From Tubulanus polymorphus (lineage: Eukaryota; Animalia; Nemertea), in NCBI RefSeq assembly GCF_964204645.1, contig NC_134031.1:744001-808000 (forward strand): a stretch of 64,000 nt of DNA, in the 5' to 3' direction. How positions within the stretch are numbered: the stretch's first letter is position 1; every line of letters starts with the position of its first letter. Shown one piece after another: positions 22,615 to 64,000 of the stretch. The notes under the pieces were generated by a model that was not told the origin of the DNA, made no database searches, and was given only the letters and a program-made list of their open reading frames with translations. The translations under genes and the position numbers were made by a program.

Positions 22615-22944
22615 TAACCGACGACGTTTGTAAGTTCGTCTGGCCAGTGTGGTGACCAGTCAGGTGTAATCACTGAGAATCAACCGGGGGTCGTAAGGCA
22701 CGTTGCGCTCTGAAAATACGAGAAATTAACCACAGTCTCATCGCCGAGAATGAATGTCATTTTTTGTAGCATTACTTTTCGTTTTTAGCTCGAAATACCG
22801 CGCATCATTAATCAATGGAGTTTTTTTAGTGGCTATCGTGAACCCACCTATAAGCAGCGTCACCGTTTCAACTTTATAATTGGTTACGAATTACAAACCA
22901 GTGAATGATTAGCTTCGTCACTGTAGTAATCGATTACACACAGT

Positions 22945-40079: not shown

Positions 40080-40536
40080 ATGCAGAATTTCAGAACAAAG
40101 TTAATCATTATTTCACTGATATGTCTAGTGACAATTGGCGAGTGTCGCCGGAGAAGAACCGCAAAAAACTGTAAAGAAAAAGATAACCTGGCTCATCGTG
40201 AACAGATAGCTAATGTCGTAATGACCGGTACAGTGAAGGAACTTTACGGATTCGTGCGAACAGGTGGTGGATCTTATATGGGCGAAGTCGAGGTGAAACG
40301 AATTATGAAAGGTGAAAACTACATTGAAAAGTTGCCGACTAAAATGTCACACCGTCGCAGGAAGATGATCATGGTGGAAGGATTCGGCGATCCCGATATC
40401 TGTGTTAGCGACGTTCACAAGTACGACACGAGAATCTTTCTGTTGAAAGATTTAGGAAATGGACATTTACGACTAAACGGGAGCATCATTAGAATGACTC
40501 TGAGAAATATAGATCTGACTGAAGCGCTCGTCAAAG
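40080..40536 (+). CDS. AGRN: Agrin first coding exon: signal peptide plus laminin-binding NtA domain (gene presumably continues beyond the window)
   Basis: REQIANVVMTGTVKEL, VEGFGDPDIC, DTRIFLL and LRLNGSIIRMTLRNID align with agrin NtA motifs; phase-1 donor AAAG|GTAAGC. Confidence 0.88.
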
Positions 40537-43500
40537 GTAAGCAGCAGCTCTAGAAACAGGTCTCAAAGTATTGTCACTTTCTGGATGCAATGTAGCCTCC
40601 TATATTTGACCGCATTTTACACGTTCATTCATATAACGTTGAATAGGTTACAGAGGTCCTTATTTCTACAAAATTGCGCGATGTTCAACTGACGTCTGGG
40701 TCAAAACCATCATCATCAACTAAACCACGTTGTACACGCACCAGTCCTTTTTATATCGTATATATATACACGAAAAATATGTATGAAATTTCGCTATGAA
40801 AATCATTCCGCGTTTCATTGCAAAGATGAGAGGTGTTTTTGATATTGAGTAGGACTCTCATAACGGCTCAGACTTACAGCAATACATAAACCAACAACAT
40901 AACACTGACATTCTAGGTACATGCACATAAAAGCCTCTTGTCGCGAATTCTTTCGGAACAATAAGAAAAAAATCTCAATTGCCACATGGCAGTTCCTGTG
41001 CATGTGTTTAACGCTATGAATATAGCATTGAGACGATCACAAAAAACCGGACCCTTAATTGATAAATGTTGGTCGTCGATTCTATAGAATCAGAGACGAC
41101 TGGCTTTTCGTTAAAGGCAAATTCTTTCAGTCGCCAAAAGAACCACGATTCATTCATATTTCGACCTAAAATCGGCTTTTGTTGATATGCGAAATCTTTC
41201 GGATTGATCGAAATGACGTTTTATTATTTCTTGAAAGATGATTTTTGAATCGTGAACAAAAAGTGATCTTTATTCAAAATTCGGCGTGAAACAAATTTGT
41301 TGTCATTGATGTACGAGTTTCCGCTAGTGTTGTGTATCCGGCCCTATTCACAATATTGCGCCCAAAGCGAGCGTCACACATTTTTTTCTTGAATATCTAA
41401 CGTTTTCTATGGACCATTTCCTTCATTTCTTCCTCTACACATACATTATACCAGTGCCTAGAAGATTATAATTTTTTTAGCTGTTATAATGGCCTCCGGA
41501 ATTGAATTTGAATTTCGAACATAATGACGGTCTTTGTTGGTCGCTAGAAATAAAAATCTTATCCGATTTCTTTATGCCAACAAACTACAGCTAAGAGTCT
41601 TAGTAAATATTTCACACCGAACATAAATATGTCAACAGTTAATCGGACGTATTTGACACTCGAGATTTTGTCGAATTCTATGTTAAGTAAGCTGGTAATT
41701 TTGTGTGTTTTAAGATTAAAATGTCGAAAAGGTTTCGCGTCGAACCGAGTTCGAAATACCAGCTTTACCTATGTAACATGATATTTGTATGCGTTTTTCC
41801 AAAAAAGAATATTACACCATTTACTTCGAAACATCTAGGGGCCAGTTCCATAGACGAGACTTCAAGTGTTATCAAATGTTATGGCTGTTCTTAAGAAGTT
41901 TTTAGATTGGCTATAGAACTAAGACGATTTTAGACTGGTTTTAAGCCTCTAAGCTATAATTATGGAACGGGTCCCAAAACAGATTTTTTACAAACTACAG
42001 AAGTTTTGATTCCCTGCTCCGTGAACTTGCCGACGCCGTCAGACAGTTGAGACTGTAATGCCGCCGGTTACTGAGATCACTTTAATAGCTCTTTGATGAC
42101 GTTTAATTTCACACTCTGTAGTGATAGATGGGTTCATATCTAATCTCGCAATATCTCGATATATCGCGGCCATCAATGATACACTTCGATGGATTCAAGT
42201 GTTTCACATTGCCATATATCAGAAAATTGTGCAAATGTTTAAAAAGACGAAAACCCACAAACCATGAATTGTAAAACTGATTTCATCTTTAAAATGTAAA
42301 AGGTAACGCCAGAAGGGTATCAACCCACAAAGCAATACCGGTCACACTAACAATCAAGTGAATTCAATTTAATTGCGACCCGCATATCTCCCAAATCAGT
42401 GGCCTTGACACAAGCACCATTCGAGTATATGATAATGATATACAAGGGTTATTGACTTGTATTAGAGTCCAGAAATAGGATCACCTTTCTTTCCAACCAA
42501 AATTAACCCAAACCCGCATAGGTCAATGTATTCAAACATTGTCACAATATCGAAGATGAATTTCGATGTTTATTGTTATAACGGATATCCGGTAGAATAA
42601 ATCCGGAAGAGCCAAATCCGCCATTATTCGCGGAAGGTTATGACCTGTTCCTAGATCTCGAGTTACAATAGTAAACGATTATAAGGTCTCATGTTATATG
42701 AGATTGTTCCTCCTTTTATGAGATTATTGTGTCTGGGTTAATAAATTATCGTTTATATATACATGGATGTGACAAGTGACACATCTTTAGAGTCTGATTG
42801 TTGATTGTTTGTGAGAGGCTTCGTATTGTGTTCGGTCGCATGAGAAGATGTTCTCGATGAACTGCACACAAGAGGATGTGACCGACTTAAACCGTCGCGA
42901 TGTCCACCACTATTCACAAACTCAGGGACTCGGGGAGCTCTATTCTTCACTTCGGAGAATTCTACATGAATTCTCTGCTACACGCTCGGTGAACACAGAC
43001 ATAATACAAATACTTCAAAGGCTTCATTCGAAAAACGTTATCGAAATGACTTACAATGATATGTATAGGATCTCGAGTATAGCTGTCTAATCCTATTCGA
43101 CATTCTCTAGTATCAATTTCATTAGCCGAATTGCGTATGGAATTATTGATATAATTGACTCTGATTAACCCCGAAATGTAGAATTATCAATGGATACTTC
43201 AACAGGTGCTCGCTGCTGCTGCTGCAACAACGATTTCCGATGAGATCGTACACTTTTTATCAATGCTTCTCATCTATAGTGTGACTGAGTCTCTCTTCTT
43301 CTCTCTTTCCTCTCAGTAACTCTTACTCGTAACCGCAATCTCATCACTAATAGCTTTATCGGTCGTGTTTAAATTGGAAATCAATAAATGTCACTTTATG
43401 TAAATATCGATATATCGATTGAGCGGATGAGATTAGTTGAGATTGGAAGAACGTCTCTGTCTGGTAACTGAGTTGACTTCTGAGAGGAAATGTGTGAGAA

Positions 43501-44250
43501 GAGAGAGGATGCTGGAAGGGTTCATCTCCATCTTCCCATCAGAGCTGTAACTATATGCCCCTATCTATACAGGATATGAATAATAAAATGCAGTCCAAAC
43601 CATGCTAGATGCAGAATTGGAAAAGAATTTAGGGCGCTTTTGTGAAATGTAGGAACTTGCATCAAACGCAACAAGCTTGAAGACCATTGACAGGGGTTTG
43701 GGGATCTTATGAAGAAAATTTGAAATGTCAAGACTATTAGATTCATGGCATTTATATAGGCTTACTAACTCGTGAAAATGTGCCGTCAAAAAATATGGCC
43801 GGTGAAATGTCTTTGAAGGACACTAGAAATTCTAGACGGTATTGGACAATACGACTGGTATTGGACAATACGGCTGATACCAGCCTGCAGATTGTATGTA
43901 CGTAGAAATATATAGTAAAACTATGGAAATAATTGTGTCAGAATCATTGAGAGACCCGTCATTAAGAGTAGTTCCCGCGGTGACAGTTATAATGAAGTCT
44001 ACATTCCTACAAACCAATCTAACACTATATATCTACCCCTATACTACTGTGGAACAGAGTATAGAAGTTTGATTAGTTATGATCAATTTGTGTAAACATC
44101 CTCTTTATTGCGATAAATCACAAATGTTTCTTTTTAAATTGAGAATCTATGAACAAAACCGGCGAATACCCAATCTCCAACAGCCGGACAAGAGCCGAAC
44201 ATGAGCCGGACAAGAGTAGGGAATGTTTTCGGAAATCAAAAGTGTATATA

Positions 44251-44368
44251 TTCATAATTCCTGAAGATGACTATTAGGACAAAAGTCGAAAAGTCTTAAA
44301 TAGACTATTATTAGACTCAAGGAAACATTTCAGGCTTTTAAGCTTTTATTCTTAGCGTGGAATTTTGC
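44251..44368 (+). mobile_element. Penelope-like terminal fragment with degenerate hammerhead motif
   Basis: ATTCCTGAAGATGACTATTAGGACAAAAGTCGAAAAGTC is homologous to the minus-strand motif at 9500-9552. Confidence 0.55.
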
Positions 44369-47300
44369 ATAATCTTTCAACAATCAGATTCACGCGAGTG
44401 TTTCATCAATAGTCGTTATTTGGGCTGATGAGTTTTGGACAGACAGCCGATGACGTCACTTTTGACATTTTAGTCTGTAGTTTTTTTCTTATTTTCGATG
44501 AATCTGTTTCGGCGCCGCCGTGATTCGAAAAGCTACACGCGATTTGATATTTCTCAGCAGTCACTCTCTCAGTTTAGACGTCGAATATGAAACAGAGTTT
44601 TTCGTGATGTCTGATGTTATGTTTTATCGGACAGAAATTAATCCTTCAGTCATAAAATATTCGCTGCCGATAAAACGAAACCGGCGGAAATTCGTTGTCG
44701 TCCATCTTTTGGGAATCGTCTGCTTGGAGATCTTGATTTATCGATCGCTCGCTGGCGCGCTATGAATGTTTGACTAGTATTTTATCTGAATCGATGCTGA
44801 ATCGGTTTGTGGTCGTCTCCGGAGATTTCTCATACTACCGTATCACTCAGTCCACCGTCTTTAAGTTTCGAAGTTCTCGATATAGTTTTAGCGACGGTCA
44901 AAATGCCTCACCTCACTTGCCACGGCATCGTTTCGATAATATTTTAGCAACAAGTGAGTGATTTTTTTGTGAACGCGCGGGCCAAATTTGACTCGGGCTA
45001 AGTCGTCTACATGTGATCGTGGTTCACAAAATGGAAACACTGAGCTCCGAGGGTGTGACAAATATTGTGTAAATCCAACCCTGAAATCGGTTTATCAGTT
45101 TTAACATTATGCAATGAAGCATCTTTTGTCAAATTCTACGATATAAGGGGAAAAATTGAAATGAATTGTAATCGCCTGGAGGAGGAGAGGGAGGTCCATA
45201 AACTCATAAAAACCAGAGCAGGCCGTTTGAGAAAAACGCAATTAGTAATCATACCGCAAAGTATCTCAACATTTACATTCTGAGATCATCAACACTAATG
45301 CTTCATACCAAAAATACATTTATGTATTTTCATTCACACTGATATTCTATAAATCTGAATATGTTCTCATAACAACAAGAGAAACAAATGGACAGATGGG
45401 TATTCAATAATTATTTGGCCCGTATAAATGGACGGATTCAAACCTCTGATCGTACAGATACCGCTGCTGCTGCAGCTGCTGCTATGAATTGTTACAGTGA
45501 TGTAATATTTAACTGTTGCCTGTATATATTGATCAATCCTAGGAAATTAATAATGATGACAATTTGATCTTCCGGTAATCAAACTCAATTACACTATACA
45601 CTGAAGAGCTCCGCCACACCGGGAAAAGTCGAACTCTTTTGTGATTCCCACCATCAGCACAGGACATCTCCTTGTTGTCACAGAGCCGACTGGCGTCGAT
45701 CACACTGTAAAACCCTACTGGTCCCCTACAACTATTTGTATTCTATGTCAGCACAGATGTATCGATCCTTAGATCCCATTGAATATTCTTAAAAATGACC
45801 CAGCCTTTTATTACTTTGTGGAGATTTTGTGCTTCTTGGTTATTAGAATATTATCGCATGAGTTATTTTTCCTATGAAAATGTCTTTCTGTGTTTCAATT
45901 GCATGTGAAATGTGAATACGTTTGAATCTGGAGATATAGATATGACATCAACAGCCTTCAAGTCGTCAATACGCGAGAGATGATTGTCTCTGAATTTTCC
46001 TTTATTGTACTGGGTTGAAATACAAGAATTTGTGAATACAAACTCTTGGGAAGATTTTATGTGATCTCGACTGACATATAAACGTGTACAAATAGTGCAG
46101 CTTATGATGATATTTCTAATGTAGCCTACATGACGAGAGATGAGAGGGAGGGGGAGAAGAAGAGGGGAAAGAGAGGAGAGGAGAAAGAGAGAGAGAGGAG
46201 AGAGAGAGAGAGAGGAAAGAGGAGCTCTCCACTCATCTCTCTGCTGAGATATGAGTACTCGATGTAATGACTCTATGTCTCTCTGAATGAACATCTCACA
46301 TGAACCTCAATGATGAAAAAATCAATTTCATTTTCACATCTTTATTTCAGATAATCCGTTGTTACAGGGTATGAACTATTATTACTTATCTTTACTTAGT
46401 TTCGCTGCATTTAAAGTTAAAAGCTTCATTAATTGCTACAGGAATCGCAACCACAATCGCTTCTTATGTGTGATGTTTAACATTATCAGCACAATTGCTT
46501 TTCGTGTTTTAGCGAATCTGCACATTTTATTAGTTTGACCAATTAACAATAAACTTGGATATAGCTGTAAACCGGCGATAACGGGTTTTCTGCCGAACGG
46601 ATAGAAAACCCTATAATTAATGTCTGGATTTTGTCTTTGCCTACCACAGTTCGTAGCTTAAAGAGAAGGTATGGCAATTGAGAAATGTGTGTCAGAATAT
46701 TCAAGAGTTCGAAGATATTCATAGTCCCGCCTCCCTAGTTCAAACTATGGGTTAATTCATACAATGAAACCTTGCGGAATAATTTGACTTCTTTATATAG
46801 AATTACCCCCTCTTACACTGGTATAATGTTATATATAAATGTTTATAATAGTAGCCTCCAATTTCTATTATATTTCCATTATGAATATTTTGTTTGACGA
46901 ATTTATTGATGTTTGTTTACAAAGATCGCGAACACGTGTCAGTTTCTATAGCAGACGAATGTCAGGGTCACGTCATATTCCTTTAAACTTGTCCGCTTTG
47001 ATTTCATCCATAAAAATATATTAGCCGCTATTATTTACGTATGAACTTCCATAAAGAATGCTTCCTTAGCTCAAAGCACGTTTTACAAGAAGTACCTTAT
47101 ACTCTGATCATAGAGTCAGGTTGTACGTAATAACCCCCCCCCTCCCCCTGTAAAAATCGCTCCTGGTAAACCCACCCTCCGAAATTCAGTTTTCTATAAA
47201 ACTATGAAAATGAATCTTAAATCTTTACAACAATATCTAGATAAACGTATGTGCATAGATATCTAACTATTACTATATCTCTTCGTGTACAGACTACGAT

Positions 47301-48762
47301 TATAACATTTTTGATGTAGCTTGCTTTAAGCATTATACGTCCATGCTTTAAGTCACAGAATAATATCATTTTCAGTGTGTAGCATGTGTGACCATCACAA
47401 CGACAACCTTAAATTTTTTTGAAATCTATAAAAGTTTTTTCAACATAAGAATATTGAATTAACTTTTTTTTGGTGGTGGGAGGGGCGGATTTTTACCTAG
47501 GCGGAATATTTACCGGGTGAATTATTTACCTGTTGCCACAGAAACAACCTCCAAATCGTGCACGAGCTGGTATATCGCAGTTTAATTTTGAAAAGAATCG
47601 AGATTATTTAAGAAGAAGATGTTCTTCTGTCAGAAACAGCTGGCATAAGGCTGGGATGGCAGTTTATCGGGGGGGATGGTGTATCGGGGATGAACCGGGG
47701 ATTACCTACGATAAGAATTTTGGAACTCCCCACCAAAATCTCTCTAGTTTCCTAATGTGTCCATTCTCTATGAGGGCAATTAGCAAATCGCTGAGAAATT
47801 CCAATGAAGTGCTCAGTAATGACGCTATGATTGAGAGGAATAGAATGCGTAGATCCAACTAATTAAACCATTTAGAGACTGAATACATGTATACTAGGGT
47901 CTACATGTCAGTATGTCATTGTACACTTGATAAGTTGTAACCAGGGGTTATTATCGCATTGTTGACTGTCAATTTAGCTCAATAACTCGGTTGTGTGAAG
48001 TTATATTTGCATAGTTGAATAATTAGCGAAAATTCTACACGACTGGAATTCGGGACTCGAACCGTACCGGGTCACGTCAAAAAGTCGTCGTTGTTTTTGT
48101 CCGAGTGTCTTTAAGTGCAGTAGCTCCTCATAAATCATGGACTTAATGTTTCAATTTCTCCGAGCGTGCCTTAAAACTCGTTTTTTCTTCATCGACCCTC
48201 AATTCCGGTTCGCGTTACATAGAAACGCGTGTAAGACTAACGAACGACCGCGAAATATAATGTTTACAATAACTCGTAGATGGCGCATGGGTCGACCAGG
48301 TGTCTACTTTACGCTGATTACTCGTGTCCAAGTAGTTATATCGTTAATTGCAAATGGCATGAAATGAAGTGTATCCAGGGAAACCAATCTCAGCTTGGCT
48401 CACTTAGAACGAGTGGGAATTTGATATGTCTCATTTTTCCGACATTGAAACCACTTGGTTTAGATGTGGCGGTATTTATCAAGCCCTTCACATTTCCAGT
48501 AGCGATCTACATTACGCGCTGGCAAACGGTTTTTAGTGGACATTCTTTATTCAGATTTTAGCTACGTTACAGAGGAGGGTAGGAATCCAGGATTCAGCTG
48601 TAGATGATTATCTAAATATGGGAATTTCATTTGTTTTGCTTCTATGCATACCTAGGATTCATGCAGCCCCAGAAATTACATGGAGTCTTTTTATTCCAGT
48701 AAAGAATTCTCTTCCAAAATTAGTATATAGAAATTTTTGAAATAATGCTCAAATACCCGTCT

Positions 48763-49008
48763 TACGCGTCCGGGTTCGAGCCCCTGTTTTACGCGTCCGG
48801 ATTCGAGCCCCTGTTATACGAGTCCGGGTTCGAGCCCTTGTTATATACGAGTCCGGGTTCGAGCCCCTGTTTTACGCGTCCGGGTTCGAACCCCTGTTTT
48901 ACGAGTCCGGGTTCGAGCCCCTGTTTTACGCGCACGGTTTCGAGCCCCTGTTTTACGCGTCTGGTTTCGAGCCCCTGTTTTACGAGTCCGGGTTCGAGTC
49001 CCTGTTTT
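48763..49008. repeat. 27-bp minisatellite TACGCGTCCGGGTTCGAGCCCCTGTTT
   Basis: Nine copies. Confidence 0.93.
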
Positions 49009-50361
49009 CCACGAGTGAGGATGAAATTGAGCAAGAAATTCTTCGATATTTTTCTCTCTATTGATTCAATGTTTCTGACACGTTTTATTGAAAGGTTGTT
49101 ATCGGTTCGTCTCTGAACCGAGTCGTGCGCGCGTCAGCCGCAGGCGGCGCTGCACCCCGCTGAAGTACCTCCAGTAACTCTCATCCGGCGTCCTGTATCT
49201 GACAACCACCGCCACCATTAACAGCAGACGATAGAAATTACACCGCAAAACACTGCGTCTCCTGTTCATGACATCGAATAGAAACACTGTCTAGAAGACC
49301 GCACCAGCCCTGGGGCCAGACGAGGATGACATTACCAGGGCCAATACGGCCTGGTGCTATAGAGCGTGTCTGATTTGGTTGAGAAATGGTTTAACGACTA
49401 AAAAGCTGTAGCAATGTGTTTATATTAGTTCTTCGCAGACACCGAGACGTGTTGCTGTTTTATCTTAGTTTCGCGTCTCCTGTCGATTGATCGATCGTCT
49501 TAAAACATTTACTGACAAGAACGGGTTGGATAAAGTTTATCTGGTTTAACGCCTTGTCACGTGTTGCGGTCAGTTAATCTGTTTACTGGCTCATCAGATA
49601 GATACTGATGGCAACAATGCATGCATGGTCAGTAGAATGTTGTCAAGTTAGAATTTGACTCGCTGTAGACAGATAACAGATAACCGCGTTTACTGCTGGG
49701 TCTCGAGGCCGTCTGCCATCAGAGTCATAGCTTAGATTGAAGACCAGTCTAAGATCATGCTAGTTCCAGAGACAATCTAAAAGCAGTCGTAAGACTTAAG
49801 ATATTTTGGACTGTGCACCAGGCTTCTGGGACCGGTACCATAGTATTAGACATAAGACTAGTCCATGACCATTCTAGTTCTTATAGCCAATCTAACCGTC
49901 TGTGATCAGTCTTGATTGCGACCACATTTTGCTATGGAACTGGGCCCTGGGCTCTGAAATTGAAGGGAGTATCTTCTTTGAGTCCACGGTGAAACAGCAG
50001 ACTGCCGCACTCCAAGTGTCACTACAATCGATGATTAAGAACAATGTACCTTCTTTCAATGCGATCTACAGTTACTGGGAAAATCGCAATTCTGCACAAA
50101 TAGAGAGTTTGAAATTGGGGTAAATTTGATACGATTAATCAAACATTGTTTCAGTGATCAGTTTATTTACCGAACAATGACTGAGACTAGCGCTGCGGCG
50201 CAGATAATAAATAATAAACAGCAGCTGAATTCTGTCACGTCACATCGACAATCATTATTACTGAACACGATTTAACCAGAAATTGAGAACAAAGTCAATA
50301 TTTATAGAGAAGAATAAGATTCCAACCAGTTTTAGTCGGTGTGCCGGGTCGGTAACACAGT

Positions 50362-50615
50362 CCCGGTCTATTCAGGGTCGGTGCTACAGCTGAGAGATAG
50401 GCCCGGTCTATTCAGGGTTGGCCCAGAGCTGGGAGATAGGCCCGGTCTATTCAGGGTTGGCCCAGAGCTGACTGAGAGCCATAGGCCCGGTCTATTCAGG
50501 GTCGGTGCTACAGCTGAGAGATAGGCCCGGTCTATTCAGGGTTGGCCCAGAGCTGGGAGATAGGCCCGGTCTATTCATGGGTTGTCTTAAAGCTGAGAGA
50601 TAGGCCCGGTCTATT
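50362..50615. repeat. ~39-bp minisatellite AGATAGGCCCGGTCTATTCAGGG
   Basis: About 6.5 copies. Confidence 0.9.
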
Positions 50616-51309
50616 GAAAAGGTTTGATTCCTTTTTTCTCGACCGCAGTCTAACTGGCGCCACGCTATTCCGTGCCGTTATACATCAAACGTCTCTGGGG
50701 CTCCGTTTTTACGAGAAAACGTTGTTTTTACTAAATCGGTTTTTATCGATAAATTTCAGCGGTTTTATCGGCTCAATAGTAAACGGTCGATTGAACCGAA
50801 CACTCGGAGTACTTTTAGCAAACCATGCAGTGTGTGTAAACCGGTCCACGATATGGTTTTCAGCATTTCATTTAGATACTCAAAACCTCCTTACGCCGGA
50901 CAGTAACACGATATGAACAACCTCCATTGACATCAATAAGTGAGCACCAACCCCATTAATATACTGACAGACAGAGACAGAGAGAGAAAGAGAGAGGGAG
51001 AGAGAGAGGAGAGTTAGCGCGACATTGTGGGTACTGTAAACTTGTACGTACAACCAAGCGCAATGTCACGAATCTATGACATCCTGCGCTGTTTTATTGA
51101 CAGCTCTGATAATTATCTCATCGCTAACATCACCGCTGCTGCTGCTGCTGCTGCTTCCCCGTGTTTCAAAAGAGAAAAATAACTAACTTCGATAAATTCG
51201 AATCCGTCGACGACAACGAGATTTCACTCTTTGAAGTTGTTTAAGTGGAAATTGTTCTAGAATCAGCGATGAATGTGATGTGAAAACAAACTCACTATAT
51301 CGGGTGCCA

Positions 51310-51632
<323 letters not shown>

Positions 51633-52218
51633 TGTCAAGGACTCTTGATGTTTTGACTTGTTTTGCCTCGAGTAGAATCTGAACTGAACCGTCAAACACG
51701 TTTGAAATCTATACACGATTAAAGGGACGCTTTAGGGCAACCGACAAATTCCCATAAATCCTACATCAAACAGTTTTACATCTGAACAACTTTCATATCA
51801 ATAGACATTTTCACTGGTCGTTCGTGGACTCATCCTTAATAGAACCCTAATCCATCCGACAGTAAGAGAGCGAGTGAGGCATATCTGTGCGCTATAAAAT
51901 GATGGTGGAAATCAGATTATTGTTGGTGTATATTCATTCGATTTGTGCCCGTCTCTTTCCGTCAGCAAATAACATTCAGCAGACCGACCACGGTTCTGGC
52001 GGAGAGTGAGACTTACTGGATAAAATCAAGGATGGACGGCAATATATACAACACCATGCGGAATATGTCAAAATAATGGTTTCTTTAGAAAGAATCCGCC
52101 GCGCTTTTTTTCTGTCATGAATACGATCGGAATGTAATCTGGCCAGGGGAGGTGGTTCAAGAATATCTGGAAAGGCTGATACAACTACCACAGCTATATA
52201 TATCCTCATACAGCGATA

Positions 52219-52475
52219 TCCAGCACCCAGTTCCACAATCCAGCACCCAGTTCCACATACCACCCAGTTCTACAGTTCAGGACCCAGTTCCACAGTTCTG
52301 AACCCAGTCCCACAGTTCTGGATCTAGTTTTACAGTTCAGGACTCATCTCGATAGTTCAGGCTCCAATTCCACAGTTCTGGACCCAGTTCCACAGTTCAG
52401 GCCCCAATTCCACAGTTCTGGACCCAGCTCCACAGGATCCAGGTCCACAGTTCACGATCCAGGTCCACAGTTCTT
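52219..52475. repeat. 20-bp minisatellite GGACCCAGTTCCACAGTTCT
   Basis: About 13 imperfect copies; complementary end AACTGTGGAACTG at 52552-52564. Confidence 0.88.
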
Positions 52476-53044
52476 GGTCTTGGTCAATATGTAACTCTAT
52501 CAGGTAATTGCAAAGTGAACTAATTGGTCTCCAGAGTCCCACTAAACTGACAACTGTGGAACTGAGTCGTGATCTTGACGACGAGTTTATTCTGATATTC
52601 TGTGATCGTCTATCGTGCTCCGATAAGTTCTCTATATGTCAGTTATTTGGATCTTCAATCACAGACGATGTTGTATAATCCACACCCGTTTCAGGTAAAC
52701 CCACTGATTTATAGAAGTAGTGACTGCAGTAAGTCCGACTAGCACCTGAATTAATCACATCTTCATTCTGATGTGTGGCTGGAACAGTAACCGTGCTGCT
52801 GGTTCTACCGCTCCTCACTGATATTACTCAAATCGATCAGATACGGTCAGAAAGGTCACGATTCTCTGAATTCCTGTTTACATCAATGATTTATTATTCA
52901 AAATAGAGAATATTCTCAATCAAACACACGCAGGGAGAAGGTTCTATTGGAAATTCGAATATTTGTGTTTTTCAAGCGCTAGAATGTGATCGAAATTATC
53001 AATGATATCAGTCAACACTTCAATCCTCACAGTCGCACAGTCGC

Positions 53045-53758
53045 CACCTCCCCCTCTCTGTGGCTGTACAGATCACCCCCTCTCCCTCTCTGTCGCTGTA
53101 TAGATCACCCCCCTCTCTGTCGCTGTATAGATCACTCCCTCCCCTCCAGTCGCTGTATAGCTCACCCCCTCTCCCCTCCAGTCGCTGTATAGACCACCCC
53201 CTCTCCCCTCCAGTCGCTGTATAGACCACCCCCTCTCCTCTCCAGTCACTGTATAGATCACCCCCCTCCCCTTCAATCGCTGTATAGATCACCCCTCCCC
53301 TCCAGTCGCTGTATAGATCACCCCTCCCCTCCAGTCGCTGTATAGATCACCCCCTCCCCTTCAATCGCTGTATAGATCACCTCTCCCCTCCAGTCACTGT
53401 ATAGATCACCCCTCCCCTCCAGTCGCTGTATAGATCACCCCCTCCCCTCCAGTCGCTGTATCTAACCCCCTCTCCCCTCCAGTCGCTGTATAGATCACCC
53501 CCTCTCCCCACCAGTCACTGTATAGATCACCCCCTCTCCCCTCCAGTCACTGTATAGATCACCTCCTCCCCTCCAGTCGCTGTATAGATCACCCCCTCCC
53601 CTCCAGTCGCTGTATCTAACCCCCTCTCCCCTCCAGTCGCTGTATAGATCACCCCCTCTCCCCTCCAGTCACTGTATAGATCACCCCCTCTCCCCTCCAG
53701 TCACTGTATAGATCACCCCCTCCCCTCCAGTCGCTGTATAGATCACCCCCTCCCCTCC
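53045..53758. repeat. ~29-bp C-rich minisatellite CCAGTCGCTGTATAGATCACCCCCTCCCCT
   Basis: About 24 copies. Confidence 0.95.
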
Positions 53759-55764
53759 TCGGTTACTGATGCCTCTGTAAATTGTAGTTTGTCACGCGAA
53801 TTTGTTTTACAATCTGTCGATATTAAAACGATAAAACTGGCGCATTTTTGTCATAGTTGAAACATCGCGACGCTGTTTATCTCTTGGAGTAATCATCTGA
53901 ATGACAGTCTCCAAGCTTTCTCTCTGTAACCGCCTCCAGTCGCCGTGAAGATCGAAATGGGAGTTATACCGCCGGATTGTCACGTGACTCATGATGGTAC
54001 GATGGATCGGTCACGTGATCGATAGGAAGACAGATTGTCTACGTGACTGATGAGAAGTTATGGGGTAATTTTGGTAATTGGATTTCTCGAAATATTTTTG
54101 CAATGGAAAATATTCGATCAAACCGGCGTAATGAATTCGACGTAAACGTTTTCACCCATCCACCGACCTGCGGAGTGATACTAGGGTGGCTCCTGTATTT
54201 CGATGAAGGCCGGAGCAGGTTAATTCCTAATGAGCGAATCTGCGACGGCTGCCGGTGCGGTCAGTACCCCTAACTCCACCGCGCAGCCTTTCAGATGTAG
54301 ACTTGCAGATAATTCGATGATGGGCAGTTACACTTCCGGTGGTTACCGGTGGTCATTATCGCGCAGTAACGGCGTCAGCTTACGCGGTCAGTGTATTGTG
54401 TGATAGGACACGTTTTATCACCGCGTTAGTGTCTAACAAACCTCGATTGAACGGAAATAAGATAAAGATTATCCGTGACTCGTAAAGAATTGCTCGCCAG
54501 ACATAGATAGAAAAACGACACCGACATAAACGGCGTATTTCACAGGAAATTAGCTGCAGTCTGAATGAGTCAAGATTCAGGGTCAAACAGCCCGTTAACA
54601 CAACGTAAATTCACACGAACAACGGCTTTTTTATTATCGATAGCCATTGAAAAGGTTACGATAAAATTCTCACTCTGTCGGTCATACGGCCATTGATGGG
54701 ACTGTAAACTCATTATCACGAGTGATTTGCGGGCGGCATTAGTGAGGGTTCTTAAATGTCGAGAATATATCTTACATTCAGCATCCACTTGCTTGGAGTG
54801 CAATACAGTCAATCCTGTTTAACTTAGCAAAATAGGAACCGACAGAATTGTTTCAAGTTAAGAACAGAAAAGAGAAAAGATCAGAAAATATATGAGGAAT
54901 GTCAGATTTCTAGGATTTGTCATGTTAGCCATGCTTGAGTAAGAATTGAAAGTGAACTGTTTTCAACTGTAAACCTCATAATTCAGATCTATGGAACTGG
55001 CCCATGAAAAGCTTGAAATCCTTATTCATTCATGGAGTTTACTTATATGCAAATGGCCTTGTGATGTCAATCAATGGCGCGCTATTGGTTCTGGTATTGG
55101 TGGGTTCGAGTCCATGTATGCTTTCAGGATGATTACTGCGTTCGAATCCCGGTTACGATTGAATTTACAACACGTTTTCTTTTCTATTGTAATCTATGCC
55201 TCGGTGGCCGTTTCTGATGGCAGTCGTGTGGTGTTCGCGATAGATTTCCACTATATAATCCCGTCGTCATCAGTAAGAATGCTAAGCCTCAGTCAAGGTT
55301 TTCGCTTGACGTCCACTTGACAGCTATTCGTAATTACCAACTTATGATACTTAAGAGTAATTCCATCAAGTGGGTATAAAGTCGATGATAGCAATGGCCC
55401 TGACTAGCGGCTAATAGCATTGTATTATAGGATAGGTCTATTCTAATCACTGCATTAGAAAAGGCGAAGGAACAAGGTACTAACAACCCTACGAAGACAA
55501 TAAGCTTTTCAGCACTGTTCTTTTACAGGAAGTTTCTGAAAAAGATGAAAAAAATCAAATGTATATTTTCAGCATTTTTGCATTTTCTGCTAAAATCTAT
55601 ATTTGATGGTTCTATCTAAGAATTCACCAGTGCAAGCGTCAATTAGAGAGTCTTATTCATCCCCGACATTGCCCTATAGCTGCCGCGCTTACATCGCCTT
55701 CACAGTTGAAATAGGGAGAAACCGTTTAAACGCCAGAAAAAAACAATTTTCGATTCGCTCGGTG

Positions 55765-55796
<32 letters not shown>

Positions 55797-56663
55797 GGTG
55801 CTGGGGCAGAGAATATTAGACTCTATAGAGTTAAAACTAGCTGTAAAAATGAATGGAAATTCCTATCGGTTGAAATTCCTTTACAATAGAATACAGACCC
55901 GTTACGAGTACTAGAGAATGAGGGAGAGAGAGAGTGGAGTTTGAGAGAGAGAGGGAGAGAGAGTGGAGTTTGAGAGGGAAAAACTGAAAGATAACACAGA
56001 TGTTTGAAATCAAATACGTTCACTTCGCGTCGTATTTAACGTTGAATATTTTATGCCGTTACTTTCAAATCGAATTTCCTTATTTCCGATAACGAATTAG
56101 AATTCGATTTCGTTTGAAAACCCAATCACTTAATGGCTGAGAAATAAAAAAGAAGCTTAGAGTGGGTAGGTGAAACCTCACTTTTACTGTTTGTGATTTT
56201 ATGGGTGATGTACACTATTTTGGTTAAATATAGTTCCTTATGGATGAAGAATAGAATTTTTAAAGATGTTTTATATTTTCAGAATGTTTGTGTATATACA
56301 TGTATATATGATGAGCTCAATGATCACTTTATATTCTGTATTGATTAACAATCAATCGATGATTTTGATCGGGCAATTTACAGCGTGTAAATTGAGGTCG
56401 ATGCTATCAGCTCGAGTTGATCTGATCTCGAACACATCTCCCATTGATCTACACGACGAACTAAACGGTATTTCCCGGTCTTGTTTCAGTTAGAGCACCG
56501 AGAAATGAGACGAAAACCTCTTCGATTTGAATTATTTGTTTCGCTGTATAGTTTGCTTCGTTTTATGATCACGACTGAGCTCACGTGATCCTTCTAAAAA
56601 CTGCCTCTTTACGAGTCCATGAAACCAAACCAACAAAACAGCAAGATATTTTTAATCACTATT

Positions 56664-56937
56664 CAGTTCCGCAGTTGGAACCTCGAGTAAACTCTGAACT
56701 CAGGATCCAATTCCGCAGTTGGAACTTCGAGTTAACTCTGAACTCAGGATCCAGTTCCGCAGTTGGAACTTCCAGTTAACTCTGAACTCCGGATCCAGTT
56801 GCACAGTTGTGAGTTAGAGTTAACTCTGAACTCAGGATCCAGTTCCGCAGTTGGAACTTCGAGTTAACTCTGAACTCCGGATCCAGTTGCACAGTTGTGA
56901 GTTAGTGCTGTGAACTCAGGTTCCAGTTGCACAGTTT
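56664..56937. repeat. ~44-bp minisatellite built from a MITE left arm
   Basis: GGATCCAGTTCCGCAGTTGGAACTTCGAGTTAACTCTGAACTCA units; shares CACAGTTGTGAGTTAGAGTTAACTCT with the MITE at 29187. Confidence 0.88.
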
Positions 56938-57896
56938 GCAATGAGAGTGAACTCTCAAAATCGTTTTATTTTCAAGGTTTTTACTGTGCTGTGATCAGAA
57001 CTCAGAACTCTATAGACCTGGGTCCAACTGACGTTTCGGGCATCTTCAGAATATCTATTTGAAACAGTCTGATGCGAAGATACTGAGTTTTTTTTTCTCT
57101 TAGCATCTTAGAACACTAAATTCCCTCTTTCTGGTAATTCCTTGGTCGCCAGAGTAGCATTATCTCTCGGATCTAGTAATCGGTTTAGAAACAACCATTA
57201 ACTTCCTCTACTGAAAATCAACTTAGAACCGGGAATTGAAAATGAAAAAAAAAAACACCGCGCTGTTTCAATCCCCCCATTCAATACGATCTAATTTCAC
57301 TCGAATTTTAAAATTAACTTTTTATCGCCTCAGTGAATGAAACATTGCGTCCTTCTTTCTCCGGCGTCTCTCTATTTTGTCTCACTCCACACGCGTGCGC
57401 GCGGTAACTCTTCACGGCGACGTCTCCTGTTGAAAAGGGAATTGAATTAAAACATGTGAAAGTAATCGAAGCCGGCGCCGGGGCAGGTGCGCGCAGGTGC
57501 GCTTCGCTAATTAGTGAGTAGTAAGATTGTGTTTTAAGGAGGCCTGCTACTGCTACGAAGAATCCTGTGAAGATTGTCTCTTTCTAACGGTAAATGTCTA
57601 TAATACGCCTACACTGAGTATCATCACTGATTTTATGATCTAATAAAATATAATATAATGATAAGAATTATGAGTCCGAAAAGAGACATAAAAACAATCA
57701 GCTCTTCTTTGGGCATCTTTATGTCGTCCATTAGTGATTGTATTTCTGTGTATAAAACTTAATGCAACTCGAAACTAGAATAAGAAGTTCTTACACTTAT
57801 ATTCTTAGCTCATTCAACGAATGAAAAAAAAAACCATATATTTCAATGGCTAATTAAAAAATAAGAAAACGTTACCGGAGTATGTATCGCGTGAAA

Positions 57897-57968
57897 GGTC
57901 GGGTTGGATTCGATCCCGGCAGCACCACGAGTGAAATAGGGACTGCCTAACTCACTGGGCCAACCTGA
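57897..57968 (-). mobile_element. tRNA-derived SINE head or tRNA pseudogene
   Basis: Minus strand GGTTGGCCCAGTGAGTTAGGCAG...GCCGGGATCGAATCC. Confidence 0.5.
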
Positions 57969-59688
57969 CAAGTTGATAGCGTCGTTCATGACTGAACCTG
58001 GTGAACGAACCTTGCGAATTCATGATGACGTCAAATTAGGGTAGACCTCTGACGTCATTAAACGTATGCGTTGTACTGAATATGATTTTGAACTACTTCA
58101 TTTAGTAAAGTCCCAAGGCGTATCTATGTATTATAAAGATATATATTCGATATTCTATAAAGTCTAGAGAGTTAGTATTTATAGGAATTGACCAGACATT
58201 TCCAGGGTTCAATAATCTATCACTTCCGCCAAAATGGTGACCTGTTCTCTCTCTAGGAGGGCGGGATTGAGTCGATCGTTTTAAACCACGAGGATCAGTT
58301 TTTGTTCGATAAATGATAAAATGTCATCGCATTTCAGCCGCATCAGACTCTTATCCGTTTAAACCACCGACTTATTTTCAGAGGGATTATAGCTTGTACC
58401 GGGGTGTATTGTCAGTTGTCGGGCGCTCAGGAGACGAGTCGGATGGAGTTTGGAGTGCTCCAATGATGTAGATACGGTAGTTCTGTGTAGTATGTGCACT
58501 GAACGCATCTCCCGCGCTCCTCGCTAGCTAGCTCTCTCTCTCTCGCTTCGTGTCCGGGTTCTGAGAGTGCGTGTGCAGCCAATACAACTCACTGATCATT
58601 CTTCACGTTCTCATACTAACTACACCGTGTTCGCGTTCGCATAGGTAGGAAAACTTACCTCATTCTTACCTCATCGAGGATAAGCGTTTATTCTGTTGAT
58701 GTTACAATTAATTGTTCATACACTTGGATTAACTACCGTATTTGTATCGCTTGATTGGATTATAATCGTCGGATACTTATCAGTCTTATCAGTTACTTAT
58801 CACCTGCACGTAAAAACGGAGTTAATATCAATTGCGATAGATGTGATAGCGTTAATGAATATCATTTAGTTTTATACGGTGAAACTTGAGAGTTTAAGTC
58901 GAGTTTTAGTTGTGACGATGATGATCGTTATTGCGTCGACGACTTTAATTTAGTAAATCGAATTAGAAATTTACAAATAGAGACGACTTCAGTATTTGAC
59001 AAATTATCCGTCTGTTCGACTGTAGTTTAATCTCATTCGTAGGTAGGATAGGATGATGATACATGTGTATTTTAAAGTTGATTTCTTCCTTTTATACAAA
59101 TATTCGATCAGTGTTTGTGGTTAGGATGAAGAATCAGATGATTCTTTCGGCTCATTTCACTTTTTCATTATCGAGTATATTGTAGTGAGTCGATGTGTGG
59201 TGTGTATTCTATTTCTATAAGTCGCGGGTTTGACAGTTGTATTCAACTGTCTCACCGAGCCGGGTCCCATTCTTCCAGTCTTCGCCCCGGCGTGTCTCTG
59301 AATTATTACCCGCATTCACAGTTTATCGCTTTGACATTTCTAATTTAAATATTCAACATCAATTAAAATTTGTTCCACTTGTCGTTCACGCGTCGCGGAT
59401 TAGCTGAAAATTGAATTCCTAGTGCGAAGCAGAATTTCTAATCCTATTTGCCGTTGATAGATTCTATTGTCGGCAGGTAACAGATATAGAAAGAAAAATG
59501 AATGATAAAAACCTGCGCTTAATCTGATATATGGAGGCAGTAACGTATTAGTAGAATAATAGTCCGCGCATTGGCGTGCAGAATTTATAGATAATCAGAT
59601 TAAGATCCACTTAAAGAAATCAAAAAGAATTCATTTATCAAGAATTGTAATCATGAATTTAGAATACACAACGTTACGGGCTCTCTCT

Positions 59689-59743
<55 letters not shown>

Positions 59744-59889
59744 TCTCCAGAGAATCATCAGGTGTTTTTTTTAAATTTTCTATTAAGAAGTATTAACAGG
59801 ATAGTAGACTAACTGACTGATGCTTTCCCTCTCGTTGTTTATACATAGATTCATAGAAATCACATCTTGTTTATTTTAACAAGCAGATT

Positions 59890-59983
59890 TTGAAGGCAGT
59901 AAAATTGGGATATTTTGAAGGCAGTGGATTGGGATATTTTGAAGGCAGTGGATTGGGATATTTTGAAGGCAGTGGACTGGGAT
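59890..59983. repeat. 24-bp repeat TTTTGAAGGCAGTGGATTGGGATA
   Basis: Four copies. Confidence 0.85.
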
Positions 59984-61477
59984 CTGGGATAATTTCCGCA
60001 GTCTGTCAAATAAAAACCCACCACATTTGATGAAATATCCCATTTATTTTCTAACCATTTCGAACGAGATTTTGTAATTACCAGATCTACAATAAAGCCC
60101 CGCGCAACTATACACGCAACGCGAAACTCGATGTTTCGAACTGAATTGTAAATAGATAACTATTAAATTGTAATTAACTAATTTAACATTGATCCCAGTT
60201 TTATACAAGACGCAATCATGTAACGGTTTAGATTTGTTTAGTAAACACGTTACACACACTACCAGCAGCAGCAGCATCACGTAGTTATAGGTTTGGTATG
60301 TGAGCTAGGATCGAGAGAGGGAGAGAGAGGATGGGTGTGTTGATGTTGTATCTTGAGTATTACGTGTATAGGTAAATACCATACCACAATACATACACTT
60401 TATACCAATAACCACCGCTATCCCTGCCGTACTGGTTCAGCTCTTCTTATACCCCGAATAACCCGGATATCTCAACAGCCAAAACCCACTTATCGAACTC
60501 AATCGCTGGATATCAACGGCTTTTTTCTGGTAAAGATGTTAATTGCCACTTAAGCATATTATGAAATGAATGCATGATATATTTCATACATCAATTTCAC
60601 AGTTTTTTTGTTGGTTGGATCTCAATTTACTCTACTATGGATCCTTCAAGCACTGAATAACTCGTAATATTTTTCTAGCGCAAGCAGCTGGCTTATTCTC
60701 TTTTGGAAAATCAATCGATTGACAGCTATTTCTACGATGCATATTGATAATTCTTTTAGAAATTGAAAAAATTAAAGTACATAATAATATTCTGAGATAT
60801 CATAATAGCTAATTAACCAGTCCCAGGATTTCATATATAACAAATGATAATTGAGGATATGATGATCATTGTCGGATTTATTTAGATACTACATGTATGT
60901 ACAGCACATAATTCGTGAAATATGTTAGCAACATGATGAATTTCAAAGTGCATTGCTAGTAACTTATACACGTCAGGTAGTCATTACTGGTTACAGTGGC
61001 TTTAGGAGGCAATAAACCATATACTCAATCGTTCCTTAAATACTGCTTAGATTGATAATAGAATCTATTATTTACCGAGATGGTGATAAGACCGAATTCT
61101 GACGTTTGTCGTGTGATAAGTTTCTGATAAGACTAATTTGAAATTCGTACAGTGTCTAAGCGAAGGAGTAGCGAAGTTGCGCAATGAGGATTGTGTCGGA
61201 TTTCAGGACGGTATTAACCGGATAGATTGAAGCGCAGACTGTTTGTGTCTGTGTAAAATACATCGGAAATATAACTGATTAATCATTATATGATGGATAT
61301 CACGTAACGTCGTGTAATCAGTGGAAGACATCGAGTATCGGATGAAAATGTCAAAACAGCGTTGAGACACTAAAATGACAGTCCTCCTAAAATTGTAGTG
61401 ATTTCACATACGCTGAAATGCTGGTAGAGTTACAGTGATCGAAGCCGCAGTTCGGGCTGTCTGAGAAAAAATCGTGA

Positions 61478-61817
61478 ATGCGAAAAATGCCAAAGATGAA
61501 TCAAGTTTATGTGTATTCACCTCAATCGGGGTCCACTAAAACTTCATTATTTACAGAACCGCCTAGTAAATCAGCGCTATGTTTGAGGTCGATAAAACGA
61601 TTTATACGCAGGAATTTACTGGCGATTCTGTGCGTTCTGTTCGCTCTGTTCTGGTGCAGTTTAGCCGTCGTTATGATTCTCGTTTATTCGCAATATTTAC
61701 ATTACGTTCCGCCGCAAAATAAAACAATAACAACAACAATGTTAACTCCAACTGAAAATGGAATTATCCTCAGACCGACCATTCGAGCAATAATTGAAAA
61801 GCCTTCCGATAAAACAG
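61478..61817 (+). CDS. First coding exon of a type II membrane protein; candidate transmembrane N-terminus of agrin
   Basis: About 45-aa polar N-tail ending in basic IKRFIRRN, hydrophobic LLAILCVLFALFWCSLAVVMILVY, Thr/Pro-rich stalk with sequon NKT, consensus phase-1 donor ACAG|GTAAGT. Confidence 0.65.
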
Positions 61818-63453
61818 GTAAGTAATAGAACAAATCAACATTAGAACGTGCTCCACCGCTGTTTACTCACTCCCACTCCCATAAACAACGCCATCTCCCT
61901 TAAAAATAGTATCGAATAAAAAAGTCCTGCAGTCGCCCAAAATCCTATCAATGGCGTAAATTTTCTTTCCAAAAACCACTATATACTTTATATTAAGGTA
62001 ACTATTTTGGAATCTGATGAAAATCCATTATGGTGACGTTTATATGAAGTAGGTGTTTTCCCCGGAGAGTGCTCGCAGATACCCCTCAGTTTCACCATGG
62101 ACTCTGTTTCAGAGTTTCGTTTCGACTCCAGACACCCCCCCCCCCGTCAAACTGAACCATTCATCAATTACCTCATATATCAACCTCGTATATAAACAAA
62201 TCTATTGTCAATCAATATTGTGGAAAGGTTTCCAATTATTGTACCACTGTTTATCCGAAATCTTTGTTCTTCTACGTATCGTCATAAAGCGTGCGGTGCC
62301 TACCGGTCCCATAATGCATTATATATTTATTGAAGAATGATGGGTAATTGGGTAACAATGGATCCGTTGAGTGGTAACAATGTTAACCGTTGATCGCCGT
62401 TGGTTACGACCTGTGTGCAGACGACAGATTCCTGTTGTTCGGATAATGGCATCGCGATGGATGTCGGATAGCGGGGGATTACACCCCGTATTAAACCAAG
62501 CGTCCGATCAATTAACATTGTACAAACACTGGAGAAAATGCCACTCGAATACGCATCATCTAGACCTACGTGGTAACATCGAAATGGCTGAAACTGAAAT
62601 TATAGTGAATGTATGAATAAGTCTACAGTCCATTTATTGATTAATAAGATTTGTTTTTCTGTGGTATTTCGCTTAAATATTGGAATACATACCTATAGGA
62701 CCTTAACGTGACCCCGAGAAACTCAAAATGCCCCGGTCTGGTACCAGTTCAGTACTGATTTCAAGGACTGTCAACGAGCGTCTTCTATTTCTCAAAAATA
62801 AATCACAGAAAAAAGAACAATTTGCCCTACGAAATCATGGCACGTTTCATGGTAACAATATCAGTCTCTTAAAACAGTATTTCAAAATTCGTTGGTGAAA
62901 GAACGGAATTGATAGCGCCAATATTTTTCCTGTCGCTGTCGTTGTCGTGTCAGTGATAAGGATGTATTAATTGCCATTTTTCATTTATTATTAGATCACA
63001 TTGAATTAACAGAAATATCGCGTATATCAGTAAAAAAGTGACCGGTTTTGGCCGCATGTAAATCGGCCACAGATGGTCGCAGCTTTGATGCACTTATTTT
63101 CTATCTCAGCAGTTTTATCAGCTACATGTAATACGTTTAGCCAATTGGTTTTCGCTGAAATGAAGCTGATATAAACCACTTCCAATACTCTATGCCTCAT
63201 TGCTGCTGTGATAAGCGAGGTTGGCTATTTTTCAAACGCGTAGTTGTTTTTCTGAACTCATGTCCGCAATCCTTACCACGCCGTATGTCACTATATATCG
63301 TGCAGACCTTTTTTTTTGGTTAGTCCATGTGTATTTGAATTCAACTCACGCTAAGACCTCAGAGCTGAAGAATTCTCTTAAGAGTTTGAGCTTTGGTATT
63401 TTTGGTCAGCGATCGAAAACATGAAGAAATCCTACCTGTTTTGTAAACACCTG

Positions 63454-63735
63454 GGCCCGGTTTCATAGACTGAGTATCAAAGTTATCCCTAGGGTTAAAT
63501 CCTCAATCTGGGTGACAACCACCATAGTAACAATGAGAAACCATGGTTATAACTGACAAATTTCAAAATGTTCCCAGGGATTATTTTGCTTCCACATCTA
63601 TGAAACCAGGCCAAGGGGTTGCAGTTGCTCAAATGGTGGTCAAAGATAATCAACGGATAGATACCATAAACCTTTAATTGTCACTATGTCAACTATCCAC
63701 TGGTTAACTGTAACACATTTTTGAGCAACTGGCCC
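63454..63735. mobile_element. Two abutting PIF/Harbinger-like MITEs
   Basis: 63454-63612 is a copy of 29955-30110; 63616-63735 (TIR CAGTTGCTCAAA/TTTGAGCAACTG) is a full copy of the fragment at about 29781-29880. Confidence 0.75.
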
Positions 63736-64000
63736 CAGGGCTCTGTACAACAGACATTCCTTTTGCCAGGCGTTTATTTGTATTATCTAAGTTATATTTT
63801 AAGATAAAATTTATTACAGTATCATCTAGCTGGCAATCGTGTCCTGAGCATTACCGTAAGCTTTTAAAAATGAAGAATGTTTCCACAATAAATTGCTTAA
63901 TTTGACAGAATGCGGCATTCAATTAATGATGTCTACTGGAATTAACGGATCGCTATGTATTCTGGGGGAATGTAGACATTGACCGCCACTGTTCGAGCTC

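Follow-up and report, generated by a model that had tools for sequence, protein, structure and literature searches.

A conserved transmembrane-anchor exon in the first intron of an invertebrate agrin gene is a candidate alternative first exon

Introduction

Agrin's two N-termini decide whether the protein is built into basal laminae or kept on neuronal surfaces. The anchored form of vertebrates dominates in brain, where its role is still debated. The locus described here raises the question of whether an animal outside the vertebrates also has both. The stretch of DNA analyzed (64,000 nucleotides, G000:C7:744001-808000, + strand, within a 268-Mb animal genome) is called the window and, by its domain content, is the 5' end of an agrin gene. 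A sequence-only reading of the window proposed that an exon at 61478-61817, inside the intron that follows the exon for the NtA domain, begins with its own ATG and replaces the secreted N-terminus with a membrane anchor. Based on its place in the gene and on its conservation in other animals, we consider 61478-61817 to be probably an alternative first exon giving transmembrane agrin.

The vertebrate layout used as the model for this proposal was borne out by the mouse gene, where one SN exon is placed after the LN/NtA exons and ahead of the first common exon (Burgess 2000, PMC2189804). In mouse, the distance is 8 kb from the LN exons to the SN exon and 0.4 kb from there to a small common exon (PMC2189804). 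Vertebrate transmembrane (SN/TM) agrin, made from an alternative first exon, is also the subject of Neumann et al. 2001, as cited in PMC1939731. Two N-termini are given for vertebrate agrins only (Bányai et al. 2010, PMC2874008; Hrus et al. 2007, PMC1939731), and the searched literature treats the switch as a vertebrate feature (PMC2874008, PMC1939731).

Results

Sequence of the candidate anchor exon

The features of the proposed exon (a cytoplasmic tail, a basic cluster, one transmembrane helix, a glycosylatable stalk and a phase-1 GTAAGT donor after 61817) were all present in the window (Table 1). The exon has 113 codons plus one base, with an in-frame TGA directly before the ATG. The basic cluster, IKRFIRR, adjoins the helix, whose best 19-residue window (residues 50-68) has a mean hydropathy of 2.9. 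The stalk has one NKT sequon, at N81, and is 23% Ser/Thr. The charge is +6 over the 15 residues N-terminal of the helix compared to +1 over the 15 residues C-terminal of it; therefore, the N-terminus is predicted to lie inside. This topology prediction, run in silico, gave a type II protein with an uncleaved signal anchor. The nearest language-model neighbours of the peptide were the N-termini of type II membrane proteins (the SLC3A2 N-terminal domain and pneumovirus G proteins), with scores of 0.77-0.89 where the tool's bar is 0.9, and these are a weakly supportive lead only.

The candidate exon is single copy in the genome, and independent DNA contigs cover it unbroken, confirming the assembly. 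Since five + strand ATG open reading frames (ORFs) of at least 100 codons occur in the 42.7-kb intron, the length of this ORF alone is not above chance; conservation across species is what lifts it above chance. Use as an internal cassette after the NtA exon was ruled out by reading the sequence, because entry through the nearest upstream AG meets an in-frame stop before the ATG.

A family of related exons in other animals

The 113 residues were compared with 1.84 billion representative proteins using phmmer, which returned 13 matches at E <=1e-3. Twelve of these were short ORFs of 84-257 residues from other animal DNA (E 1.5e-7 to 1e-3); the thirteenth was a junk repeat protein and was set aside. 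A word-index protein search found no match to the exon peptide and only three short ORFs with the family alignment, although this search is limited by its length window. The family used here consists of P0002-P0013, P0016, P0017 and an ORF in L021 (a 4-kb contig from one metagenome scan), all of them unannotated short transmembrane ORFs. One of the twelve, P0009, clusters with a hypothetical protein from the clam Tegillarca granosa (KAJ8320443.1). In T. granosa CM056597.1, the anchor exon is located on the + strand at about 17,186,251-17,186,334.

Eight internal columns of the aligned family are invariant (L, C, F, F, W, A, M and Y) and an N is nearly so, giving the motif N-x-L-x-x-[IVL]-[VL]-C-x-x-F-x-x-F-W-[C]-x-x-A-x-x-M-x-x-x-Y. 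The basic juxtamembrane residues 36-45 of the window ORF also align to the family profile. When a profile was built from the 12 relatives, with the window excluded, and run against 3,912 open frames in 164 kb, the window ORF scored 77 bits (E 1.2e-22) and the runner-up 20 bits. In a separate observation, a 45-residue frame on the minus strand just past the second follistatin exon (L006:5671-5805; extended 89671-89805 in the numbering explained below) scored 19.5 bits against the profile, a match that is probably due to chance. The helix is conserved with unusual strictness (invariant C, F, F, W, A, M, Y), a hint that it has a role beyond anchoring.

Conservation is confined to part of the exon. 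The helix-coding core is the only DNA within 5.5 kb around the exon that is similar to the relatives, and no upstream non-coding conservation was found between the window and the relatives. The stalk is unconserved in sequence and in length (about 8-45 residues), as is the cytoplasmic tail (about 20-180 residues). Behind this variable stalk, a phase-1 GTAAG donor is found in the window and in six of the six relatives with a clear donor in DNA (L018, L019, L020, L021, L023/L024), and in several further relatives known from protein sequence only, the last residues are a read-through "GK", the translation of G/GTAAG. A GTAAG kept in one phase behind an unconserved stalk is the mark of a splice donor; therefore, these ORFs are 5' coding exons joined to further exons, instead of one-exon genes.

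The closest relatives are about 50-70% identical to the window exon over the core. A closer pair was available from Tegillarca (L018) and a related clam contig (L020), whose alignment begins 1.5 kb upstream and breaks off 17 bases beyond the predicted donor. The ORFs of this pair are 88% identical without gaps, their differences falling 5/5/22 by codon position; in the upstream flank, identity drops to 75% and the alignment has 151 gap columns. Judged by this pattern, the exon is under purifying selection at the protein level. A 0.9-kb non-coding block (L018:11246-12150 and L020:525-1424), 0.7-1.5 kb upstream of the clam exon, is 80-88% identical, above the sequence adjacent to the exon, and is a candidate promoter or 5' untranslated region of the anchor exon. 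These comparisons bore out the expectation that the peptide is conserved in other animals (12 related ORFs, the profile score and the shared phase-1 donor). On this evidence, 61478-61817 is a real, conserved, protein-coding 5' exon with a conserved donor, and the exon family and its donor are what is new over the sequence-only reading.

The agrin gene and the place of the exon within it

To follow the gene, extended coordinates continue the window numbering through the next 100 kb (L004 to L013; L004 = 64001-74000, L005 = 74001-84000, etc.), and exons were searched singly, one after another. The secreted first exon has an ATG at 40080, a hydrophobic signal-like segment and, as had been claimed, a phase-1 donor (AAAG/GTAAGC) after 40536. 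Pfam NtA (PF03146) matches its residues 36-144 with 83.9 bits (E 9.4e-24), solved agrin NtA structures in the PDB match it at E 4e-13, and nothing else in the genome matches NtA strongly. A 184-residue open frame elsewhere has a weak NtA-like match at G000:C6:4677401-4677679, its 28.3 bits being barely above the Pfam cut-off. The single-exon NtA layout also occurs in four relatives, ending in ...A[AV]VKG, and the DNA of one relative (L022) has a donor, AAAG/GTAGGA, that agrees with the window donor in both position and phase.

Downstream of the NtA exon, a follistatin/Kazal profile made from the gene's own repeats found no + strand match between 40.5 and 83.2 kb extended; therefore, intron 1 is still open at 64000. 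The sequence-only reading had noted no such exon in the 23 kb after NtA and had predicted a phase-1 one farther on. The first match to the profile was the open frame 83174-83497 extended, and the first follistatin exon was placed at L005:9229-9453 (starting at G000:C7:827229), 21.4 kb downstream of the candidate exon, with Kazal_2 at E 5e-11. Its acceptor has a long pyrimidine tract and is in phase 1 (ttcag/AA), as is its donor (TAG/GTATGT). The NtA donor and the 61817 donor each supply a G, which produces the same codon, GAA (Glu), followed by PCERHYC... The candidate exon thus lies between 40536 and L005:9229, on the agrin sense strand, and is frame-compatible with the shared follistatin exon.

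No other recognizable coding exon was found between the candidate exon and the first follistatin exon, either with the gene's own follistatin profile or among the ten longest non-repetitive + strand frames, in which Pfam detected no family. These 21.4 kb are largely minisatellite, and the minisatellites of intron 1 give rise to long spurious ORFs on both strands. A 45-kb NtA contig from one relative had no Kazal exon within 10 kb downstream, so a long intron between NtA and follistatin is not peculiar to this genome. Near the window's end, a short repeat of about 160-300 bp with very high copy number was seen at 63419-63812. Copies of this repeat, over 40 in number and 91-98% identical, are spread over all large contigs; its words reach a depth of 16,000-37,000 in the DNA run, where the flanks are at about 26.

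The rest of the gene confirmed its identity. On one strand, the exon order is NtA, a run of follistatin/Kazal exons, two laminin-EGF exons, one more Kazal, EGF and three Laminin-G regions; the span is about 101 kb, with intron 1 taking up 42.7 kb and the 3' end near 140.9 kb extended. Kazal_2 was found in 6 of the 10 frames sent to Pfam, and further follistatin exons were found with the own-repeat profile. Two EGF_laminin exons interrupt the follistatin array, after which a Kazal follows on the same strand. Laminin_G_1/2 matches fall in three regions (133.5, 137.2 and 139.3-140.1 kb extended) with EGF exons in between; some single-exon matches are under the Pfam cut-off because the domain is split across several exons. 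The SEA domain, which in vertebrate agrin has Ser/Thr-rich flanks, had no match in the scanned exons, with part of the open frames scanned. An exon for an EB module (L010:7926-8084; Pfam EB, E 1e-5) comes after the last follistatin exon and ahead of the first Laminin-G region, approximately at the position of the vertebrate SEA domain. Echinoderm agrins have also been reported without SEA (PMC10381214). The downstream exons give the full agrin architecture. The concern that the NtA exon might belong to a short NtA-only gene was checked against the relatives, in four of which the single-exon layout recurs, with the L022 donor in the same place and phase; the NtA exon is not a stand-alone gene.

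Further frames were observed in and around the gene. The frame of the second follistatin exon (L006:4826-5269) also has an upstream ATG and a hydrophobic stretch, its confirmed part being the Kazal/EGF match. Past the 3' end of agrin, long open frames of 390 and 355 residues with a multi-pass membrane look lie on the minus strand (L011:8939-L012:2710; extended 142939-146710), and a 386-residue frame of similar look lies upstream at window 22930-24087 on the + strand. The multi-pass frames flanking agrin may be receptor genes.

Table 1. Features of the agrin 5' region, in window coordinates unless a downstream segment (L004, L005) is given
Feature	Position	Strand	Basis or remarks
Agrin first exon, secreted form (signal peptide and whole NtA, laminin-binding)	40080..40536	+	Pfam and PDB matches
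Proximal intron 1, minisatellite-rich, without recognizable coding exon	40537..61477	+	Follistatin profile blank; tandem repeats; ORFs low-complexity or unremarkable
Candidate alternative first exon, predicted cytoplasmic tail (residues 1-45)	61478..61612	+	ATG with G at -3; upstream in-frame TGA
Predicted transmembrane helix (residues 46-70), N-L-L-x-I-[LV]-C-x-x-F-x-L-F-W-C-x-x-A-V-x-M-I-x-x-Y-S	61613..61687	+	Family motif
Predicted extracellular stalk (residues 71-113 and first base of split codon), NKT sequon, Thr/Pro-rich	61688..61817	+	
Splice donor GTAAGT, phase 1	61818..61823	+	Full 9-base consensus CAG/GTAAGT
Distal intron 1, continuing to L005:9228 (19.2 kb beyond window end)	61824..64000	+	No follistatin match, no Pfam family
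Minisatellites of intron 1	48762-49008, 51310-51625, 53051-53758; L004:2537-3463; L005:4351-6154		Include a (CTG)105 run and a 1.8-kb array

Discussion

We propose that two promoters would give two forms of this agrin. Transcripts from the upstream promoter, using 40080-40536, would encode a secreted, laminin-binding agrin with signal peptide and NtA. The internal first exon, 61478-61817, would supply its own ATG, a basic cytoplasmic tail of 45 residues, an uncleaved signal-anchor helix and a short glycosylatable stalk. Splicing would connect the phase-1 donor at 61817 with the phase-1 acceptor of the first follistatin exon, 21.4 kb downstream, and the product would be a type II transmembrane agrin without NtA. 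The part of this switch that now stands is the layout, the phase and the conserved 5' exon with its donor. We infer the exon's own promoter, its splicing from 61817 to the follistatin exon and its topology; position, strand and phase fit.

Several observations weigh against this proposal. The only public run containing the exon is genomic DNA, whose contigs pass straight through the donor; since these contigs are contiguous over the exon and both flanks, the run is DNA and silent on expression. The motif was not found joined to a Kazal domain in any protein or contig. No relative's locus reached an NtA or follistatin exon, including 28 kb downstream in Tegillarca, where the 40.7-kb contig L018 has the anchor exon at 12809-12892 and neither of the two agrin exons; a weak tblastn match at 29.3 kb of L018 was not a Kazal exon. 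The other contigs of relatives (L019-L026, from Logan, ENA and JGI) are too short for synteny, and three ENA contigs of 12-45 kb showed no informative Pfam neighbours in their gene lists. L022, with NtA, and L019, with the anchor exon, have adjacent run numbers and do not overlap. Because the relatives' contigs end short of agrin exons, linkage to agrin is shown in this genome only. The annotation of Tegillarca gives the exon a separate hypothetical gene, although that model is poor. Finally, phase 1 is the commonest phase for signal or anchor exons and for extracellular modules, and the phase match alone is therefore weak.

Some of these observations could be explained if the exon opened the coding sequence of a small gene of its own, nested in intron 1 of agrin on the agrin strand, with short or unconserved downstream exons that escaped recognition. 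Such a gene would agree with the Tegillarca annotation, with an exon that is real and spliced, with a first follistatin exon as far as 21.4 kb away, and with contigs of relatives none of which links the exon to agrin. However, same-strand nested genes are uncommon, and by our arithmetic the chance that an unrelated single-copy exon falls in this intron in the sense orientation is about 1e-4 (42.7 kb/268 Mb, halved for strand). The interval that would have to hold the remaining exons is mostly tandem repeats and yielded no Pfam family or follistatin-like frame. A first exon used constitutively by a separate annotated gene should also be visible among the 1.84 billion representatives, yet phmmer found no long annotated protein there with the helix motif. 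For an alternative first exon of agrin, a protein of about 2,000 residues, such an absence is expected, since the exon would be hidden behind the longer isoform in clusters of 50% and 90% identity. We therefore regard a nested gene as unlikely.

Another explanation, less probable still, is that the exon is a relic: conserved elsewhere and intact here, but untranscribed in this species or present only in non-productive transcripts. The modest identity of the closest relatives, too low to gauge constraint in this lineage, and the sole run, which as DNA is silent on expression, are compatible with a relic. Decay would be expected to hit at least one feature, whereas the 113-codon ORF, the ATG, all invariant residues of the motif and a perfect consensus donor are retained. 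A further alternative was that the ORF is there by chance, its hydrophobic stretch and GTAAGT being accidental; ORFs of this length are indeed expected by chance, and five of at least 100 codons occur on this strand of the intron. A chance ORF is now very improbable, given an E of 1e-22 (77 bits) against a profile built without the window ORF and a donor conserved across species; the specific invariant motif, the third-position bias in clams and the profile score have effectively refuted it.

The alternative first exon of agrin that we favour resembles the vertebrate SN/TM exon in several ways. In both, one ATG-bearing exon lies between the NtA exon or exons and the first shared exon on the same strand. 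It is predicted here to encode, as it does in vertebrates, a short cytoplasmic tail, an uncleaved type II signal anchor and a short stalk, and to be in frame with the follistatin array, replacing signal peptide and NtA; the likeness is one of layout. To our knowledge, the vertebrate SN helix is without the LFWC motif. The distances also differ from those in mouse, since 21 kb separate the exon from the NtA exon on one side and from the first follistatin exon on the other, and a single exon encodes NtA here compared to at least three in mouse. Moreover, splicing and expression of the vertebrate SN form are proven, while those of the exon described here are proposed.

Invertebrate agrins have been described from C. 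elegans (AGR-1; PMC1939731), from Trichoplax, Apis, Tribolium, sea urchin and Ciona (PMC2874008) and from echinoderms (PMC10381214). Like these, the gene studied here has a follistatin array, laminin-EGF, EGF and LamG, with NtA present or not in the described proteins. Unlike it, each described species has one N-terminus (a signal peptide with or without NtA, or a model starting at follistatin) and no transmembrane first exon. A single isoform was found in C. elegans by 5' rapid amplification of cDNA ends (Hrus et al. 2007, PMC1939731). For echinoderms, the agrins listed in a 2023 review of matrix proteins have NtA, start at follistatin or have an odd fused domain, and the review does not mention an anchor exon (PMC10381214). 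The sequence-only reading was aware of no transmembrane agrin outside vertebrates, and our full-text search of the literature likewise gave no such description. The other members of the anchor-exon family have the helix motif, the basic juxtamembrane segment and the phase-1 GTAAG donor in common with the window exon, which is the only copy with known genomic neighbours, the agrin exons.

Should the splice be real, this locus would extend an already known type of switch to another part of the animal tree. One could go further and suppose that the secreted/anchored switch of agrin is ancient and that the LFWC-motif exon is the protostome counterpart of the vertebrate SN exon, but we hold this to be doubtful. 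An ancient switch would mean that an anchor exon lies in the NtA-to-follistatin intron across lophotrochozoans, perhaps more widely, and that dual-promoter control of matrix-bound versus cell-bound agrin predates the vertebrate neuromuscular role. A conserved anchor exon in the same intron of lophotrochozoan agrin, if true, would mean either that the switch is evolutionarily older than supposed or that it evolved more than once. It would also flag a conserved exon that is missing from, or mis-modelled in, the annotated proteins searched, as in Tegillarca, and would offer a simple invertebrate system for the function of cell-bound agrin.

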